DNA from: Iphione sp. A-MEVVRFRX5
Taxonomy: Eukaryota
DNA: 64,000 nt
Reading direction: 5' to 3'
Assembly (NCBI GenBank): GCA_976226885.1
Contig: OZ320318.1
Location: 79,112,001-79,176,000, forward strand
The translations under genes and the position numbers were made by a program. Positions 8,511 to 38,000 of the stretch are shown one piece after another. Each line of letters starts with the position of its first letter. Positions within the stretch are counted from its first letter, which is position 1. The notes under the pieces are model-generated. The model made no database searches and was not told the origin of the DNA. It saw only the letters and a program-made list of their open reading frames with translations.

Positions 8511-9849
8511 CTTTACCATTATGACAGTTTTCCCCACCAGGAGACGCATGGTGCGCAGATCGCCACTCCGGACCCCCTCCCAACCGGACATATTTTCGCA
8601 TTCCGCTACCCCTCCGGTTGAGGAGGGCCGTCGGTAGATGATTGGACATTGTTTTATCATAAAATCCAACGGTTATGTCATTGTCAGCCAGTCAGTCAGT
8701 TTGTATTGGAGATCACAATGTAGGTAAATAGCAAATATTATGTCACAGAGATTCTTGATGATACATTTGATTGTGATTCCATACACAATAATTGAAGCAA
8801 AGGATTGAAAGGCAACACAATGGATTTAATAGTAACAATAAAAAAGAATTCCTATCTCTACCTGTACAATCACCATTGGATATGCCATATGTCTCTAGGT
8901 CGAGTTCGAATGGTTAGAAAGGTACAGTATCTACCTTCATATGCATGATATTTTGAAGTTTAAACGTTATGTGGATCAGAGTCCAAGCTTTGTTAATACA
9001 ACTGTTCGCAAAGAGTCGTCAAATATATTTTGAACGATTTACTCTTCTTGGCTTGTTCTTTCGACTTCCCTTCCTCCGCCTCCCACGCACGGTTGCCTTA
9101 GTTACCGGCCAAAAAGGTTACGTAAAATAGGTCAGCCTCTGATGTGCCCAGTAAGTAAATTCTTGAAAAAATATTAATTAATATTAAGTTTTCAAAGAAT
9201 ATTTATTGTATCCTTCCAGATTATTGAAATGTATAATACCAATTCAAATTTATCATTTATGAATCATACTGGTATTGTCTTGATGTTAGATAAGTAAAAT
9301 ATTGTAGAACGTGAAGTCCGATGCTAATAAACCTACGCTGAAACCTCCATCCGAAGAGTAGTGATTCCTGTCGTGATCCAAGAAGTCGAGAAAGAATGCA
9401 TCTTTATAGTTGAAGCCAGCACCACCTCATGGTAGATAAATTAATCAGACTCAGTCGAGCTATCTGCCATTTCTCCGCTTGGTTATTTTTAGCCCGACTC
9501 CTGGTTGCCATGGAGAGGGGTATTCTAGGAGCCTGCCTCCTGGAAGAGGGAAATACGATCACGCCTCCCAACCCCCTGACAGCTGCTGCTGGTGCACATC
9601 GCAGCAACCCCAGCAGCCCTGCTCCCTACACATTTTAACTGGGCCCCACCCAAACCTGACTCAGACTGACCTTCCCTGAGTGAAAGCCTCCCCGTAGCCC
9701 TCTTTCCTCTACCTCTCCCACCCCTCACCCCCCTGGAATGCCTTCCTCACACGAGCAGGGCCCGTGGTAATCCTAATCTCCACGCAAGCCGTCGACGGTC
9801 TCGTTCTCCCGCCCGAGGTGGAATTACTGTTATTGTCGCGTCGCCTCTG

Positions 9850-9980
9850 NNNNNNNNNNNNNNNNNNNNNNNNNNNNNNNNNNNNNNNNNNNNNNNNNNN
9901 NNNNNNNNNNNNNNNNNNNNNNNNNNNNNNNNNNNNNNNNNNNNNNNNNNNNNNNNNNNNNNNNNNNNNNNNNNNNNNNN
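9850..9980. other. Assembly gap (131 N)
   Basis: Run of N. Confidence 1.
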
Positions 9981-26000: not shown

Positions 26001-29000
26001 AAGAGTGACAACGAGGCGTAAACTCCAGATTCCCCCCTCCACCAGTTTCACAGATACCTGTAACTTATTCAGCTGTGAGATGAAACATTTATTTTTCAAC
26101 CAACAAAACCTCTGCTATGCGAACTTAAGAACAGATACCTGTAACTTATTCAGCTGTGAGATGAAACATTTATTTTTCAACCAACAAACCCTCTGCTATG
26201 CGAACCTAAGAACAGATACCTGTAACTTATTCAGCTGTGAGATGAAACATTTATTTTTCAACCAACAAACCCTCTGCTATGCGAACCTAAGAACAGAAGA
26301 ATAAAATTTGGTAATACTGCATACATAGATATCATTTCATATCTTGAAGTGTGTCGTGATCTGTATATATTATGCATGTGTATTTGCATTACAGGTTATG
26401 TACCTCTTTTCTCTTGTTTTGGAAACTACATACATGTACATATATATATCATGACTTGACTAATACTCCTTGGAAACATTGTGTTATGTTCAAAGCTCAC
26501 TTTTTGACTTTTATAATCTGGAGACTGTGATGACCTGGTTGAGGTCTAACTTGGGGCTTTCTTTTTCAGACGGACTAGCTAAGGTGGCACTGCCGTAACC
26601 GCTACTGGACTGAGTGGATACGTCGGACACGGTATCCCCCTCGCTCTCAGGAACCAAGGTCAGAGAAACGAAACCAAAGTCAATCGAAGGGTCAAGGTCA
26701 GGGATCGAGTGGCACTCGCTAGATGTGCTCCTATACGACCGGACGGATCCTTGCTGTGTGGGGACTTGAAGGTGATGTCCCTCAAGACAAAGATCACGCT
26801 CACCTTGGGCCGACGTTGAAGGCCGCCTAGGCTCTTCTGCAACGTCACCTTCTTTGATATCCTCGTAGAGGGCGTTCTCGTCGGTCTGAAATTCCAGGTA
26901 TTCCGGCTCCTCCTGCGGCGGCGCTAGTTGACTCACGTTGATGTAGGCGCCGCCGCTGCTGTCTTCCTCCTCCTCTATTATCCTGGCGGGCTTCGGCGGC
27001 TGTTCAACAAAAAAAAAAAATACTCATCCACTTAATGGGTATCAATAACATATTGGACCCTTCGCCAGAGGCGGAAGTAACGGTTACTGCCGACGTCACT
27101 TTTACTAAATTCTGACATTGTCCAAATTTGAATCGATTAGATTGGTCGATTCCGATTTTGACGTCACCCAAAAAACGTGCCAATAGTACCCATTTTTTCA
27201 ACCGTTGGCGATACGTCCATTGTCTGACGGTTCATCTCAATAACTCCCTCGCATGAGGGCAGGCAAGCGTAAGTCTTGGATGTCCATATTCGGTATTGGT
27301 TGTGCTATGAGCTGAAGTATTACAACTAATTTTACATGGATTGTAATTAATTTTCTGGTACGACCATTTTCAATCGAGGCAATATGGTCATTGTTAAGAT
27401 ATGCCTGGTCACTTTTAGTTAAAAATGGGTTGTCCATAGATTTTCAACTGGTGGAGCACATATATCTACGTATATATATATATATATATATGTATATCAT
27501 AAACCACAACCTCTCTCTATTTTGGCACCAGTCATGAGCTTCCCGATGAGCACATTGGCCGTGTTAATACCAGCCCTTCCCAAAACCATGAACTAGTCCG
27601 CTCTCTTAATGTTCCTCGAATTTGTTTATGTCAAGGCCGTTAGAGGTTGACCTCATCCTCGGTCAAATATAGAATTTTCCTTGATTCCTTTTATCATTCA
27701 AGCTATGAGTACTTCAGCACACAATAGTCATGCATGGATCTCTCGTCGAAAAAAAAAAACACTGCATCCGGGTAGCGCCATTGGTTTCAACCGCTAAAAA
27801 AATGTCAGACCTTGTCTAGGCAACATATTATAGAGACAAGCCTAGGTCAGAGGTTATTCAACTATTAACTCACTGGTGGGGCCATCTGAAGCGTGGCCTG
27901 CTGGGTCTTCCGCTTCCGGCTGTACTTCCGGTAGAGACTCAGGTCCTTTCGTGAGCGATCTGTACCTTTTCCTATGGACTTTTTCAAAGTGCAACTAAAG
28001 AGAAAACAAATATAAACGCGAGAATTAGCATGGTTGAGACGGTACTGGTTCTTTTCCATTGAACGTATCGTTGAGACGTTCTTTACCAGAAAAGTATTAA
28101 ATTAAAGCCACGGCTCCATTTTATTACCAACACCTTTATTTCAGAAAGATCTGGGTACCAGTTATTTTGGTGAAGGGAATTCAGGGGCTTTTCAGGGGTT
28201 TCATGGGTTTTCTTGGGTTGCCCCTTCGGTGCTAGTTGCCTGCCGGTGAAATAGTAAAGCGTTTCTCTCGTAGCAGATTATGTATATTCGATTGAGGGTT
28301 ACATTTGTTATTAGGGATACGATTCCCAACATGGCCTTCTCTTTTGTCTTTCTTGTTGAAACCAGCCAGAAGGGAGAAATATCTAGGCGAATACTGGTCC
28401 ATCTACAGAGATAATAATTTTAAATCAAACTCGAAAACACTTCATGTCATTGATTGCTTTATGTTAAAGCAGTCTTAATACAAGGACAGATTGACGAACA
28501 TCTTGGGAACCCTCTAGGGTGGGATCACGGCATCTTTTCAAGCTTTCCCTGCAACCCTGCTTATCTGTTAAATTACAGATGAAGAAGCATACTACACCGT
28601 CCACCAATCTCCGGCTTAACTGTAGGTTATACAGACCAACCGATCAACGTTAGCGGGTAAAGCTTACCTACTTTGGCTGATTGCTCTTGAACTAGTTCAG
28701 CTTTACAAACTTCATCTCAAAATTGATAAAAAAAAACCCACACACGGGCAAACTGACGTTTATAACCTTTATACCTACCGTCGAAAACTGGAACTGTATT
28801 TAGAAAATTGTATGAGAATCGCAAACAACGAAAGTTTGGGAGAGTGGCTTTAGATCATTACATCATAAGTGACATTCACGTGTAAATTATTACCCGGCAA
28901 CGATTGGAAAAAAAGAAGCTGAAAGAAAGATTATCACTGTTAGCGTTACACTATTACTTTTTAATCTAACTTTCCAAATATCGTTCAAATCTCGTTCAAA

Positions 29001-32000
29001 ATCCATCCATTTTCAATGCGGACCACATATAGTTCTACATCTTAAATACACTTTGGACTGATCATCTGAGAAAGAAAAAGTACATATATATGATACAAAA
29101 CAACAGGGCGTTGATTGATTGATCAGGTAAGATCCTGTCGACAGATCACGCAATCAATCGTGTTTACTCTTTACCAAACTTCCTCTCCTACATATATGTT
29201 CGGGAACCATTTACCTTAGCAACAAAAATCTTGATCTGGTAACATGAAGGGAGTGGCACACTTGAAGACGTACTCCGTGCAAATGTTAGGAACAAATAAC
29301 GAGGTCAGAAAGGTTAATTGTACCCTGACTAGATACAACGTTGGGGCGGTAACAAAAAGCAATAACAGCCAAGTGGCTATGGCAAGGATTCCTGACATTT
29401 TTTGTTCCGACCCAAATCATAGTGCTGGAAATAGCTCAGCAACCATTCCATCGATAAAACTATCCTTAATCTTTTTATATCCTTATCTCTCTTTATATTC
29501 CTCATTCCTTTTTATATATTTTCCTCTGTGTTGCATGCATTGAGGGCCCCAATACTAAAAGTCAGTATACATGTACATATGTGTATGAGGGTATGCTGTT
29601 CTCCACTGAGGCGCCAGCGAAATAAAGTTAATATATATGTGGGTGAGGCTATATAGTTGTCAAAAAAAATGTTCAATACTGAAGGCTGTCGCGATTTTGA
29701 ATGCTTGTGGTGCATGTTTTTTTTTGCGAAATGTGGCAGGTTGCCCAGCCCTGTTTACTGAACAACAGAAGAGAAAGACCCTCAGTGACCAACTCAACAC
29801 AAGGTGTACCAAGGATGGCTCGTTACCCAGGCATTATGAACCACTGGGATATGGTGTATGGGCTATATTGAATAGGTAATGATAGTAACGTAGCAAAAAC
29901 AATATATTTCATTCTGGACGTACCCATACATTGCGCACTGAACAAGCAACTCTTTCAGCAATCGTTAAATAGAAACATAATTAGCTCATTTAGGAATCAT
30001 AGGCCAATAACATGTCACTAACTCAATGACATAAACTGGACACACTGACCAAAAAATGGCAAACTTCATACACAAATACGAAGTCTAGAGTCATCGAGGA
30101 CAGCTAGGACTGTCATTTAGTGTTGCACACACTCATCGAGTCCAAGTACGAAACAAAATGCACAACCACGTCATGTCTGATATCTTACACAACAAATGGT
30201 TCCAGTCTTGTGTCCTGAACAACAAGTGTACCAAAACTGTCTAACTGATACAGATGCCCAGAGAGAAGCAATGAACTTTATAATAATACAGTAAAATTTC
30301 GCCATTGCAACACTGCTTGGTACCAAATGATTATGTCTGCAACAGTGGGAGTACTGGAATAGTGAAGGGTTTTTGGCATCACATGATTTCATTCCGTACC
30401 GTGAATCTGTGTGCAAAATATTGTTCATTTGTCAACTATGTAACATAGCTAGTGACTGAGGTTTAATAGTCTCTTGTAGAATTTAATCTCTCTTTTACTT
30501 ATCGAGAAGACACTCACCAATGCTAATGCTCATCAATTAGGGCAACCCTAGGTAGAGACAATCTTCAACAGGTATCCATGACATGTTATATATAAGGAAA
30601 CAATTTCATTTAAGAGGCCAACCCTGTGGTAAAAGGCAAATTTATGCGGTCACAGTGGTGATCGCATTAGAGTTTTTTTTTACCGTGTTTGACTTAAATG
30701 GTTTCTTTGGCCTTCATGCTGAAGTCATAAATAAATCTATGAACGGTTCGCCAAAGACTGACCTCATCCTCATCTTAAGCTGTCTGTAGTATCTAAAGTA
30801 ATCACAGTCTCTGTCCTCTGCTGTTTGTGGGGTAGCCCCACCTAATACAATCACAGAGTCTGTCTCATGTGTTTTGTAGGGTAGCCCTATCTAATGTGAT
30901 CACACAATCTCCATCACACCCTGTATGTAGGATAGCCTTATCTAATGTAATCAAACGAGCTGTCTTCAACTGTTTGTAGAGTAGCCCTGTAAGGAACATT
31001 ATGCCTGAGCACATAAGGTGAGTTCATACAGGACAAGGATGTTACTTTGCAGATGCATCGGTTTTCATACTTATAGAGGCTGTTCTAATGATGAATACAA
31101 AGCTTACTGCTTAATGCTTACTCAATCGCTTCCTTTTAGTACTGGTCTGGTAATCGCTTGCCATATTCGTTATGAAAGTCACCATTGACGGGATAATCAT
31201 GTAACACAAATTCCTTTGTTATATTCACATACTGTGACTGGGACACTGTGATAGTCCACTGACCGAAGGAAAAGCCTTGAATACTACCTCCTATAGGAAC
31301 AATCAGAGTCCCCACAATCATTCTCCACCAGAGGAAGTTGGATCCACCCCACTAGTTCCTGCCCGATTTTTACCATTCTCACCTTACTCCATTTTCAACG
31401 ATATCCATCTCTTCTCTTTGGTCGCTGTCAGAGTCTGAGTTTCTGTCGTGGGGAAAGAATATAGACAAATGGATACGAATGAGAAGGCGAAAAGGGGAAT
31501 AAAGACTTAGTGCTAGTGTTGTGGTACCGAGGGGAACTTACATTGTACTGGTGCTTTGTTTGGTTAGTAGAAGTACTTATAGTAGATCAGTGGTGACTGC
31601 TTGTTGGTGATTCCATCCCCATCATATGATAAGGATGTATTTCATCCTTTGACAGCACATATACACGTTTGGAGTAGCTCTTTTCACATGGAGTAGCTCC
31701 ACCTAGCTACGAGCTGTGTATAATAAGAAGCGGTTTACCGACAGAGTGACACACTGGGTGCAACACCGATGTGTGTGTGCAGCTGTGAAGATTCATCCAT
31801 TGCAGTACAGTATCTATATACATCTCATTCAGTGAGCTGTCACTTGAGGTATCGCTACAGTGACAGCCACTAACTACGACGCATGCTATTCTGCCTCTGT
31901 GACATCAAAATAGACCATCCGGCAGTGAAGATTCGCTTTTTTTTCTACGTCTGGTATGTAAATGGCATTATGCAATGGGCTGTGATGGGTCGATTCTGTG

Positions 32001-35000
32001 CATCACTCGTGTTTGATCCTACTAAGTGCAGTCAAAATCGGTTGACTTCATGATTATTATTACCGTATTTTCCAATCCACAGTTTCCATTCACCTGTATC
32101 ACTAGATCACTGCTCGTCGTTAGTCCTTTCTAAAGTAGAATTCAATACTGTATTCTTTCATCTGTAAAAGTGAGAATATGTACGAAGGTTTTTCAGTCCA
32201 ACGATATTGTACGAACATCTCCAATAAGATAAAAGATTTTCATCCTGGTGACTGTGTGTATCATTTTGTGTGTATCGCAAACGTCCGAGAACACTGACTA
32301 CAGGTGACCGACTTGTAGTTACATGTATTTTGTTTTCGATCCAGAAATGGTGTTCACTCTTGACATGACGCTGGTGATGATTCGTGAAGTCAGGAGCATT
32401 CTCTCATATATTCCCTATTATCCGATGCCACACGCGGTTAGATCACGTGATTCTTAAAGGAGACCGATGTTAAATCTATCTTATCCATCATACGTCATAC
32501 TTGAGGAGACACATCAGAATACACTGTAAACCACGACTAATTAATAATTCCTTCAGGCCTCCGTCAGGTAAGAAAATATGGAAAAAAACTACAATATACT
32601 AGAAACCTTGGTTTCAAACGTGGCGAATACTGACTGCTGAACGTGGTTCCTGTGAATCCATATTAAGACATTAGTAGCTGTGCATGACCACAATGAACAA
32701 AACATACAAACATTTAGACACTAATTGTTGCACAATATCCGCATACGCTTCTATGCATTAGTACTCGATCCAGCCCAACTCTTTCAAGTACATATGGTGC
32801 GGTGAGAGAAGGACATAATTCCTTTACACTCTCATAGAGTGCATGTCAACGACTCTCTATTTCCAGCTTAGCATGCAAACACCCAAACCACCTGATTATC
32901 CGAAGTGCGATGACAATGTGCATACGTTTACTTCAACATTGTGTTACATGTCGTTAAGCATGTCTCAACAAAATTAGCCAATTTTAACGAAGAACCTCCT
33001 ATGTTGCTGCGTATGTTCGGGTACGTCATGATAGGTGGCCAACCTCAATTAACCCCAAGCTAAAGATAATCTCCTACTGTCGGGGAAGACATTTGAAGAA
33101 ACTACAATATACTAGAAACCTCATGTTGATCTGCCTTCGAGGAACAAAGTTTTATTCACCAGCCAGAAAAGGACTGATATAACTAATAGGTATACAGAAG
33201 TATTATATACTTTAGGATAGGTAGATTTACCATTCAGCTAAGTTTGGATTGCTTACCGTCTTGGTATGGGCTTCTTTCGCACTGTGGATCTCTTCATGTG
33301 AGGGTTGGTGTACGCAGTCAGGTAGGCAGCAGGGGCGTAACCAGCCTCTCCCTGGTAACTACATGAAGGAACCAGCGGAGAAAACAGGTATTTAATAAAT
33401 AGAGTGTTTCATTGACTTTAGGGATGACATGATTTTTATCGAGATCGAGGGGCACCAAGAGGGAGCAGTGGGATGGGTAGGCGGTCAAAAGGAGAGACAG
33501 AATTAGTGGAGAGTTGTCCTGAAATTAACTTCAATTTAACGCTTTACTGACCATGCGTGAGATATATCTAGACAGGTGGACTGCTATATATACAACAATA
33601 GAGACCACAGGAGAGCTACGCACCTAACGATCCACCAGCCATCCAACAGTTTGTGCATGACCTCTACGATAACATCTCGTTCGAACGAGATTTCGTCCGA
33701 CATCTCCGCTTTGTATGCTTCGGTGGTAATGAACTTCTCGAGATTACCTAGAATATTGAATTAACCGGATAATTACACATAATAAATGAGGGATTCATCT
33801 CTTTCAGACCGTTGAAATTTACACGTGCATGTCCATGGTGTATGTATGTATTTGTCATACAATGTACATGACCATTTTAAGTGCATTAGGACAACACGTA
33901 GTTTACCATGGGTACGTTCGTAATCTTTTGAAGGTCAAATTCACACGGCACTGGGCGAAACATACAATGAAAGCCACACAGACTTCGACAATGTTTCGAT
34001 ATGTCCCCAGCCGTATATCACTATCACAGGAAGAATTATTGATAGAATTCTTGATAGTCATTATCATATATAGGTTCATGAATTATCCATTCATCTATTT
34101 ACATGTAGTCCTACAGACAATATAACTATGATATTTAATTAATGGTACCTACACTGCCTTAATGTACATTATGCTGCTTGCTCTTCTATATCTACGTTGT
34201 GGAAACCGGCTTACTGAGATGACAATTAGATAATAAACTTATTCTTAGTCGTGTTGTTACCTGTGTATGTGGGGTCGGGCTCGTCGATCTCCACGGGGTG
34301 AGATACTGGGTCTAGGTAGGAAGCGGGAGCCCAGCCGTGAGCGTTGTCAGTCTGCACAAACCACCATCCTGCGGACGACAGAACGACGGCAACGATACAC
34401 CGAAATTCACCAGGCAGAAATGGTAATGGTACAACGTGTAAGAAGCAGGCCCGTAGCCAGGAAATCTTGTGGGGGTGTATCTCAAATTAGAGAGGTGAAA
34501 CTCTTGGCTAGATAGGTAAAACTCCTGGTTAGAGAGGTGGAACTCCTGGTTAGAGAGGTCCTCTTTCCTATCTCTCTGCTCTCTCTCTCTCTCTCCCTCT
34601 CTCCCTCTCTCTCCCTCATTTCCTCTTTCTCATGATACACCCTTGGCTATAGGCCTAGAGAAGTGGAACTCCTGGCTTTTCTGGGGTGTACCAGCCGATA
34701 TCCCAGATACCCCCTTGGCTACAGGCCTGAAGATGGTATGTATACATGTATGTACGTTTTGTTTATTCACTCTGGCGAGATCATTCAGTGATTGAAGGAA
34801 ATAGGAACAACCATATCTTAAATATATCTTATCCTGCTCCCACATCACAAAAGAAAAGGGATTTCTCCTGCACAGGAGCAATCATGGTTTCCCATTTATG
34901 AAGTATCTTATCTATGGTAGCTTACTTCATCTTTGATATATTTTCTTCCTAGTTCTTCGTCTACAGGTCTAGGATAGGTTCTTGCCACAGTCACGACCGA

Positions 35001-38000
35001 GACTGCACGACATCCTTTTCCAGGAGGGAACTACAGAAGGAATACATTGTTTTCAGATTCTTACCATTGCTGTTCTTCTCCAGAACCTCCACATGCATCC
35101 CCTCTTTGAGCGACACCTCCGATTTCTCCTGAGCCTCATAGTCTGTCACCACCTCGTAGGTCTCCAGGGTGACGGGCCCAGAGATGTTCATGTCATCGTT
35201 ATCAGTGGTTTCTGGCAACGTAATGATAAAAAAGGTCAACAGGGCGAGGGAGGGTGTGGATTGATTTATTAATAATAATAATAATAATAATTATTATTAT
35301 TGTATATTATTTGTCTTCTATGTATTTAGTCAGCGTCGAGCATCTTATCTATAAAGATGTTCCTACATTTACATGCAAGTCATATTAGTATAAAGTGTGG
35401 TAAGAGCTCGTCAAGGCTAGAGTCTAAGGCAAGGATCCTTGTTATTCTAGAGTCTAGAGTATTCTACGGCTAGTGTCATTGTAAACAGAATGTCATGCAA
35501 ATATGGTCAGATAAATACATTTTTTGCCCGAATTGAAAAGGTACGTAGGTTCCTGGTAGTAAACTTATGAACATACATGTATAATAAATTAGGAGCAAGG
35601 ATACCCCTCCGTGCAGTATTTATAAATCTGAGTTATTGACTGTATGAAGATCTAAACAGAGTCGATGAAAGATTTTCAGTGCTTGTTGTGACTTCTTCTA
35701 ATAGTATATTAGTATATAGTATAGTAGTAGTATAGTAGAATACTTAGCTATTTACACAGATCTAGGAAACAATAAATCTCTGTATGACTCACATTCCCTC
35801 CATTTCCCGCCGCTCCCTCTTGCCCCCACACATCCTTATCCTCCGTGCCTCTATTTTAGAATATTAGACACCTATTCCCATGTCTCTGCTTCCCCATTCC
35901 CAGCCCCCCCCATCTCCCCTGCCCATATCGACCTTTTCCCTTATCTCATCCTCATGACCTATTTCTTCCTTCATATTCATGGCCCACTCCCCCATACTCC
36001 CATCCATCAATCTCATGGCCCATTTTTCTATACGCCCTACCTATGCTTCTATACCTTCCCTCTCGACTCATATTTTCAGTCAGTACTGAATCAACAACAT
36101 TTAATCGACACGAAAGTTACACAGCAATATCTCTACCTAAACCAGCATAGAGGAATCAATCATGCCCCGGATATTGTTGGGCTGTGCCAGTAACGTAGTG
36201 GTCTAACTAACTGTTAACTCAAAGGGGGGCTTAGGATAACTCATCCTAGTGCTACTGCTAAGGTGGTGTAATAAGAACTATATATCTTAATGATAAAACT
36301 AAGCCAACTTAAGATTAACTTAACATTACTATATCTACGTAAAGCTGGTGTTAGTCCCAACCTTCCTGTCCTCCCGCCAGTCTGATATTTAGCGCTGTGG
36401 TCGACTTGGCCCTTCGGATGGGAGGGGACTGGTCCCCAGACAGTTTGGGTGTCTTACGGCCTGCTGTTCGGCCAAGGCAGTATCATACGGCAATGAGTGG
36501 AATATTCACATGGAAACTGTACTATCCACGGAAAACGGCAGGACCTAATTGTACTAGACAAATGCTGACATAGCTCTGCTAAACCACAAATACTAAGCCT
36601 AAAAGCAACAGTCCTTTCTTGAGTTTTGTATTTTAACAAAATTCCATTTATACATGCTGGACTACCAACTACAAGCTTATCACTGACAATTTAGACACTA
36701 AATGTTCTGTTATTCACGGCGTCGCTATTCTATTGTTAGTTAGAAAAGGAAAATTAGCTTAATATATCAGCACAAGCAATATTCTCAATTGTACATGATG
36801 CTCATACAAAGCAAAACATTAGTCTGCAAAGAGTACAGTGATAACGACTCCAAGGCATCAGTCAACAACAAAGTAATATTTTTCGGTTACAAGTAATGTA
36901 TATGCTTCTACCTACTGATCAATATAATTATATTCATCATCAAAAAATTGACATCAGAGGAACACAGGTGATCTCTAAGGCATGTACTGGAATAGTCACT
37001 TTTTTCCCTACACCGTTTAATGCTTGTCTTTGTCTGTTTCTCAACTTTGATGAAGGGGAACTGTTGCCGAATACCCTAGAATATGCCAAGCAAGCTCTTA
37101 TGCTGTCATTCCAATTAGAACACGAAAGTAAAACGGTAACCCCTTAAAGCGTATCAGGGTAAATGTATCTGTGTGTATAATAATAATTGATAATTAATAA
37201 TAATTAACGATGGTATTTACTGCCAAAATCGCGACGGTCGCACATCGACAGATACATAACATCCTTTCCTCGCAAATGAAGTCAGATGAATCATATGTAG
37301 AAATGGGTTAGTTCGCTATCAAATAAAACGCTACCAGTGCTCACGAGCTTAATGAAGCACCACATATCCTTCCTATCACGTCAAGCTAGATGCATAGCAT
37401 GTGGTAACAGGTTAGTTAAGTAGCATATCGAAGGCTGTTAATGGGTACACGTGGGGATACCTACCTTTGTTCTTTTTCCGAAGGAACGGAAGTAGCGCCA
37501 TCAGTATTCTCGACCGGTCTGGCTTCCGGCTGGAGGGTAACGCGGTTCAGAATTTTTAGAACACATGATATAAACGATAAATCAAATTTGGGCACGTATA
37601 AATGACACATATCAGGTACCAGCGTCATGCCTCATTATATTGGCAATTATTATGTTTCTCTCGATTTAAGCTCATATAAATACAGTAATGATGTGTGTGA
37701 CTTCTTAAATTGCACACGGGCCACATCTTGACACACAATATCCTTGACATACACGTCAGCGCTGCCGGGGGATGGGGGGCGGGGGGGGGACCCCACCCAT
37801 CAGCCAGGAGGGATCTACATGGGGAGCTACGAGAGTGACTCACGTGGCATCTTTAGGGGGGTTTATGTCCTCGTAGCGGGCTTCCAGGAAGTCCAGGACC
37901 TCGTCCGAGGCGGAGATCTTGGGGTGCAGCTTGATGAGTTCCACCAGGTAATTGGAGAGGTCAGTCTTCCTCTGGTTGGCGATTTTCTCAGATCTTGAGA

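Follow-up and report, generated by a model that had tools for sequence, protein, structure and literature searches.

We conclude that the 60-nt exon-like segment examined here has about an even chance of being a pseudo-exon, unused or marginally spliced, within an intron that is ancient and has expanded in this lineage, in a p47phox/NCF1-type gene of an annelid. The segment lies on the minus strand of the window (the whole 64,000-nt stretch of Iphione sp. DNA that was analyzed), and a sequence-only reading of that DNA had proposed it as a cassette exon controlling a NOX organizer through splicing. We consider a chance resemblance at least as likely as a genuine switch governed by splicing. The normal message would join 33257 straight to 27994, and the continuous KKPIPRR-CTLKK so produced, lodged in the groove between the two SH3 domains, would keep the protein in its closed state until phosphorylation, as in p47phox. 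We infer that the candidate is unused and that in the worm the motif has an autoinhibitory role. The odds of a real exon are raised by the exon-likeness of the segment and lowered by its intron-like composition and the lack of a conserved counterpart.

The candidate (31442-31383, minus strand) is exactly 60 nt long and is flanked by AG and GTGAGA; its letters run ...cccacgacag, AAACTCAGAC...GGAGTAAG, gtgaga (also written AAACTCAGACTCTGACAGCGAC...AATGGAGTAAG). Its sole open frame is the one demanded by the flanking exons, the upstream of which ends at 33257 in ...AAG CCC ATA CCA AGA CG before gtaagc, and the downstream of which begins at 27994, after ...ctctttag, with TTGCACTTTG (also written TTGCACTTTGAAAAAG). 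The codon split at entry gives R on inclusion (CG+A) as on skipping (CG+T), and the exit codon AG+T gives S; therefore, the 20 inserted residues would be NSDSDSDQREEMDIVENGVS, of which 7 are acidic and 1 is basic (net charge, -6). They would stand between ...KKPIPRR and CTLKK... in phase 2-2, with the frame kept. Our rereading matches the coordinates, phase, and peptide of the earlier description, which had placed a 60-nt phase 2-2 exon with strong splice sites in PIPRR-CTLKK, and the three junctions named there (33257-31442, 31383-27994, and 33257-27994) all coincide with exon boundaries of the rederived model (Table 1). A reading of the segment as a recursive splice site was rejected, as ACG joined to AAACTC rebuilds no 5' splice site.

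Table 1. Exon model of the host gene and position of the candidate segment (window coordinates)
Feature	Coordinates	Strand	Remarks
Possible exon 1	40298-40233	-	
PX domain exons	39222-39142, 38231-38156, 38012-37844	-	Pfam PX; 1kq6 match; region 37465..39222 with linker exon
65-nt linker exon RKPDRSRILMALLPFLRKKNK	37529-37465	-	Reconciles phases of last PX and first SH3-A exons
SH3-A, two exons	35211-35065, 34368-34261	-	Pfam; collinear with Owenia P0027
SH3-B first half	33747-33624	-	Pfam SH3_1; NCF1 chains
SH3-B second half and linker	33358-33257	-	Ends ...KKPIPR(R), phase 2; aligns with Owenia P0027 312-347
5262-nt intron splitting PPRR from x-T/S-I/L-K/R	27995..33256	-	Position and phase same in Paralvinella and amphioxus
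Candidate 3' splice site	31443..31470	-	Pyrimidine-rich ...tgtctatattctttcccc then acgacAG; acceptor 4.1
Candidate 60-nt cassette exon	31383..31442	-	Would encode (R)NSDSDSDQREEMDIVENGV(S); required frame open, length divisible by 3
Candidate 5' splice site, AAG/gtgaga	31377..31382	-	Donor 10.7
Polybasic, autoinhibitory-region-like exon CTLKKSIGKGTDRSRKDLSLYRKYSRKRKTQQATLQMAPP	27994-27874	-	Aligns with Owenia P0027 352-388 and Paralvinella CTIRGK...
196-nt exon after polybasic exon, PPKPARIIEEEED...STSAQ	26999-26804	-	Donor AAG/gtgagc at 26804
Probable last coding exon, tail of ~248 aa, DDIYDD...RVAKFEEVS	17062-16317	-	Stop 16319-16317; frame-consistent with 26804 donor

Domain content and nearest relatives mark the host gene as a long-tailed p47phox/NCF1-type NOX organizer with two SH3 domains, from an annelid. 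Exon pieces were searched singly or as separate rows of an alignment. Pfam recognized PX (E values of 2.4e-5 and 0.026) and four SH3 half-domains among the pieces, with the first-half exon of SH3-B matching SH3_1 at an E value of 6.9e-7. Among solved structures, the best matches of the SH3-B piece were NCF1 chains (E value, 1.2e-11), including the autoinhibited 1ng2 and 1uec, and the best match of the PX piece was the NCF1 PX chain 1kq6; the second-half exon of SH3-B, searched alone against solved structures, matched nothing. A polybasic region with a PPRR-x-S/T motif directly follows SH3-B, where KKPIPRR-CTLKK...RKDLSLYRKYSRKRK aligns with the family motif, and, with regard to the C-terminal proline-rich region by which p47phox-type organizers bind p67phox, a PPKPAR stretch comes after the polybasic exon. 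Pfam searches of the downstream exons gave no SH3 signal, and the gene in the window shows two SH3 domains only. The closest full-length relative comes from the annelid Owenia fusiformis (P0027, unnamed, 829 aa), and all exons from the first PX exon through the polybasic exon are collinear with it. The next relatives are amphioxus homologues of 758 to 890 aa, one of them named NCF1, and the long tail of the worm gene resembles those of the 829-aa Owenia and the 840- to 890-aa amphioxus homologues.

Two details of the exon model deserve mention in their own right. The 65-nt linker exon (37465-37529, minus strand) has a weak acceptor, with a score of -0.1. The donor at 26804 is strong, and if it is read through, the frame stops after ...VITVSRL at about 26513.

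A representative protein search with the SH3-B exon as the query returned mostly multi-SH3 Tks-like proteins, none of them from this species. In the 1.18-Gb genome, the sole other match of this exon (contig C15, 49214939-49215049; L003) belongs to a separate Tks/SH3PXD2-like multi-SH3 locus, and a search of the genome for a second organizer gene found none. Four loci reached through a 70-aa ENA fragment (L005-L008) were dropped as relatives, as they represent a Tks-like multi-SH3 gene.

By several measures, the candidate is more exon-like than would be expected by chance. Scored with a rough splice-site matrix, the absolute values of which are indicative only, its acceptor (4.1) and donor (10.7) fall inside or exceed the spread seen in the ten other exons of the gene (acceptors, 0.1 to 7.3; donors, 6.9 to 12.5). 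The 5262-nt intron contains 175 open, frame-preserving AG..GT segments, among which the candidate alone has sites at both ends that resemble those of real exons; shuffling the intron under a first-order Markov model gave 0.007 segments as good, or 0.22 at the thresholds of the weakest real exons. Sites of this strength bound only 9 AG..GT pairs on the minus strand across the whole window, and the 3 that are open in any frame are the first PX exon, the 26999-26804 exon, and the candidate. The segment is purine/GAR-rich and splicing-enhancer-like, its purine content of 0.68 standing at the 97.7th percentile among intron windows. It is single copy in the genome and unique in sequence, not a repeat; no source from which it might have been duplicated was found in the window, an Rfam search of the window returned no family, and no other feature overlaps it. 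The candidate exceeds chance for one intron, and a scan over many genes also yields such cases by chance.

Elsewhere in the window, a 99-nt segment on the plus strand (50483-50581; acceptor, 8.1; donor, 11.4) has two open frames and probably belongs, as an exon, to a gene on that strand, and a run of 131 N occupies 9850-9980 (assembly gap or masked).

The composition of the candidate is that of its surroundings. Its GC content and GC3 are both 0.42 and the GC content of the host intron is 0.40, whereas the ten well-supported coding exons range from 0.47 to 0.60 in GC and from 0.52 to 0.78 in GC3. Eight of its 19 codons end in G or C, which by our own binomial estimate favors intron over exon composition about eightfold. 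Such a composition speaks against a coding exon of great age but leaves the case for a young one unaffected.

The intron between 33257 and 27994 splits a motif that is found family-wide, PPRR followed by x-T/S-I/L-K/R, and the correspondence drawn by the sequence-only reading between this junction and the GAPPRRSS segment of p47phox is borne out by the alignment of PIPRR-CTLKK with mammalian APPRR-SSI. None of the 24 family members or isoforms carrying the motif (Owenia, unnamed transcript-derived proteins, amphioxus NCBI isoforms, fish NCF1, Hydra, and Tks-type proteins) has an insertion between RR and x-T/S-I/L, and in a 36-sequence alignment the motif is ungapped and conserved on both sides of the junction. 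The orthologous intron of Paralvinella palmiformis has equal position and phase (...QRR followed by CTIRGK), is about 197 nt long (L009, 15899-16096), and contains no cassette. In amphioxus, the intron again has equal position and phase (...PPRR followed by STIQ) and spans about 1 kb (L010, about 8698-9682), and several amphioxus NCBI isoforms show no insert at the junction. The phase is 2 nt + 1 nt in Iphione, Paralvinella, and amphioxus, and the shortest form measures about 0.2 kb and the longest 5.3 kb. Because position and phase are equal in annelids and amphioxus, the intron is ancient; by the same comparison, the 5.3-kb form is a lineage expansion of it. Conservation in related genomes had been named earlier as a check on the exon, and here the proposal fared poorly, with Paralvinella, Owenia, the amphioxus isoforms, fish, and Hydra all being without the insertion, although the relatives compared are distant ones.

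A listing of sequencing runs for 26514-28000 contained no RNA run. Protein collections were also searched by shared words for transcript-derived proteins from the worm itself or a near relative, and none was found. The Owenia query, which shares many words with the worm gene, found nothing nearer than Owenia itself, and the polybasic exon alone found no candidate sharing enough words. An alignment of Owenia 230-560 with separate exon rows proved a poor profile, with which nothing scored, known relatives included.

In p47phox, the autoinhibitory region (AIR) fills the groove formed by the two SH3 domains, and serine phosphorylation releases it (PMC2121648). With Owenia as a proxy for, not a copy of, the protein encoded in the window, we modeled the complex of the bis-SH3 unit (190-330) and the polybasic segment (336-395), with controls. 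Against a best control of 0.01, the ipSAE was 0.71 (median of three runs: 0.71, 0.72, and 0.02), a mark that 51 of 78 solved complexes attain, as do 2 of 108 mismatched pairs; since like complexes are solved, this score shows likeness, not binding. The runs agreed in at least 21% of contacts, with a partner pLDDT of no less than 43. In the model, the contacts defined best join P344-R347 to the conserved Trp regions of each SH3 domain, and contacts at 337-349 and 351-353 flank the intron position, between R348 and R349, on both sides. The earlier proposal that the junction falls inside the segment occupying the groove is thus consistent with the Owenia model, which puts both sides of the junction there. 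An AlphaFold2 model of Owenia 175-400 (pTM, 0.37) gave confident SH3 domains and a pLDDT of about 50 at the motif. For the partner, a search of the genome for the p22phox family found nothing at an E value of 0.01, and at an E value of 10 the family profile (PF05038) gave three weak matches of 17 to 21.5 bits each on contig C11 (70740834-70749336; L012 and L013). They cover profile positions 3-18, 45-76, and 95-123 and are collinear on one strand, which is suggestive only; the locus is probably a CYBA/p22phox gene, and so the target of the groove probably exists.

Several readings of the segment have to be weighed. For a pseudo-exon speak the absence of an insertion in every motif carrier, the ungapped alignment, the short Paralvinella intron without the cassette and the amphioxus isoforms without the insert, the agreement of its composition with the intron and not with the ten coding exons, and the failure to find in protein collections any transcript-derived protein with or without the exon. 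Against it stand the rarity of so exon-like a segment in shuffled introns, the fact that the other two open strong-site pairs on the strand are real exons, and the coincidence of the single open frame with the required one in a purine/GAR-rich, unique sequence; moreover, absence from distant annelids is uninformative about a young, lineage-specific exon. The possible, though doubtful, alternative is a real lineage-specific cassette, in which the 60 nt would be included in some tissues or states and would place an acidic, serine-rich loop (net charge, -6) after PIPRR. Inclusion would put N-S-D-S-D in place of C-T-L-K-K beside PIPRR and keep an R-R-x-S site, and it is reasonable to expect that the acidic 20-residue insert would weaken docking. 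From the bis-SH3 groove the insert would displace both C-T-L-K-K, as one half of the docking motif, and the helix that follows, and the resulting organizer, its autoinhibition weakened, could engage p22phox without kinase input. The phosphomimetic, NOXO1-like effect of inclusion put forward by the sequence-only reading would be coherent with such a change. A cassette gains from an exon-likeness well beyond chance for one intron, from its purine-rich sequence, from an insertion point inside the interface predicted for Owenia, from a motif conserved family-wide on both sides of the junction, and from the three weak collinear p22phox-family matches. It loses from an exon conserved in no relative examined, from intron-like codon composition, and from the lack of any protein-level sign of inclusion in protein collections. 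The complex score, obtained on Owenia, may also reflect memory of the solved autoinhibited p47phox structures, the AlphaFold2 model of Owenia is only weakly confident at the motif, and a 20-residue insert could loop out, with both halves staying bound.

Strong splice sites, intron-like composition, and absence of conservation are the usual signature of young exons included at a low level, and the candidate combines all three. It may then be a noise exon or proto-exon, spliced in at a low level or belonging to another or a noncoding transcript, without a selected protein function; we consider this unlikely, as noise has no need of a preserved open frame and no Rfam family or other feature overlaps the segment. 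Constitutive inclusion, which would simply lengthen the linker, is very improbable: although the splice sites match those of constitutive exons in strength, the segment would interrupt a motif without gaps in all relatives, differs in composition from each of the gene's other exons, and is absent from both other annelids examined.

The full switch, which we count as a part of the cassette reading, would toggle one NOX organizer between a kinase-gated and a preopened form by splicing an acidic, CK2-site-rich 20-residue loop into PPRR-xTL, and we regard it as quite unlikely. If it were true, one gene would do the work of vertebrate p47phox and NOXO1 together, and we know of no prior case in which splicing, in place of phosphorylation or gene duplication, sets the autoinhibition of a p47phox-type organizer. 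A used exon would offer a simple handle on basal versus induced production of reactive oxygen species (ROS) in an invertebrate; an unused one would leave an ordinary annelid NCF1-like gene. Either way, there is the modest result of an ancient intron that splits PPRR from xTI, with position and phase common to annelids and amphioxus.

Set beside known systems, the candidate resembles intronic pseudo-exons and young exonized sequences in its good AG and GT, its long host intron, its intron-like composition, and its lack of conservation; it differs in being open in the needed frame, divisible by three, and not transposon derived, features that are less common among them. Neither literature searches nor the relatives examined yielded a splice insertion in an AIR. 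With Tks4/Tks5 (SH3PXD2A/B), the worm gene shares a PX-SH3-SH3-PPRRSTVK ancestry, but those proteins carry 4 to 5 SH3 domains, compared to two in the gene of the window, and the worm's Tks-like locus lies separately on C15. Like vertebrate p47phox/NCF1 (1NG2 and 1UEC), the worm protein combines PX, two SH3 domains, and a polybasic segment with an alignable motif; it differs by a long tail of about 300 aa, as do the Owenia and amphioxus homologues. NOXO1, the constitutively open vertebrate organizer, has lost the AIR (PMC2121648), and the product of the worm gene would be expected to act similarly if the exon were included. However, NOXO1 is a separate vertebrate paralogue without an AIR, whereas the worm gene has an AIR-like exon, and inclusion would split that region by the insert without removing it.
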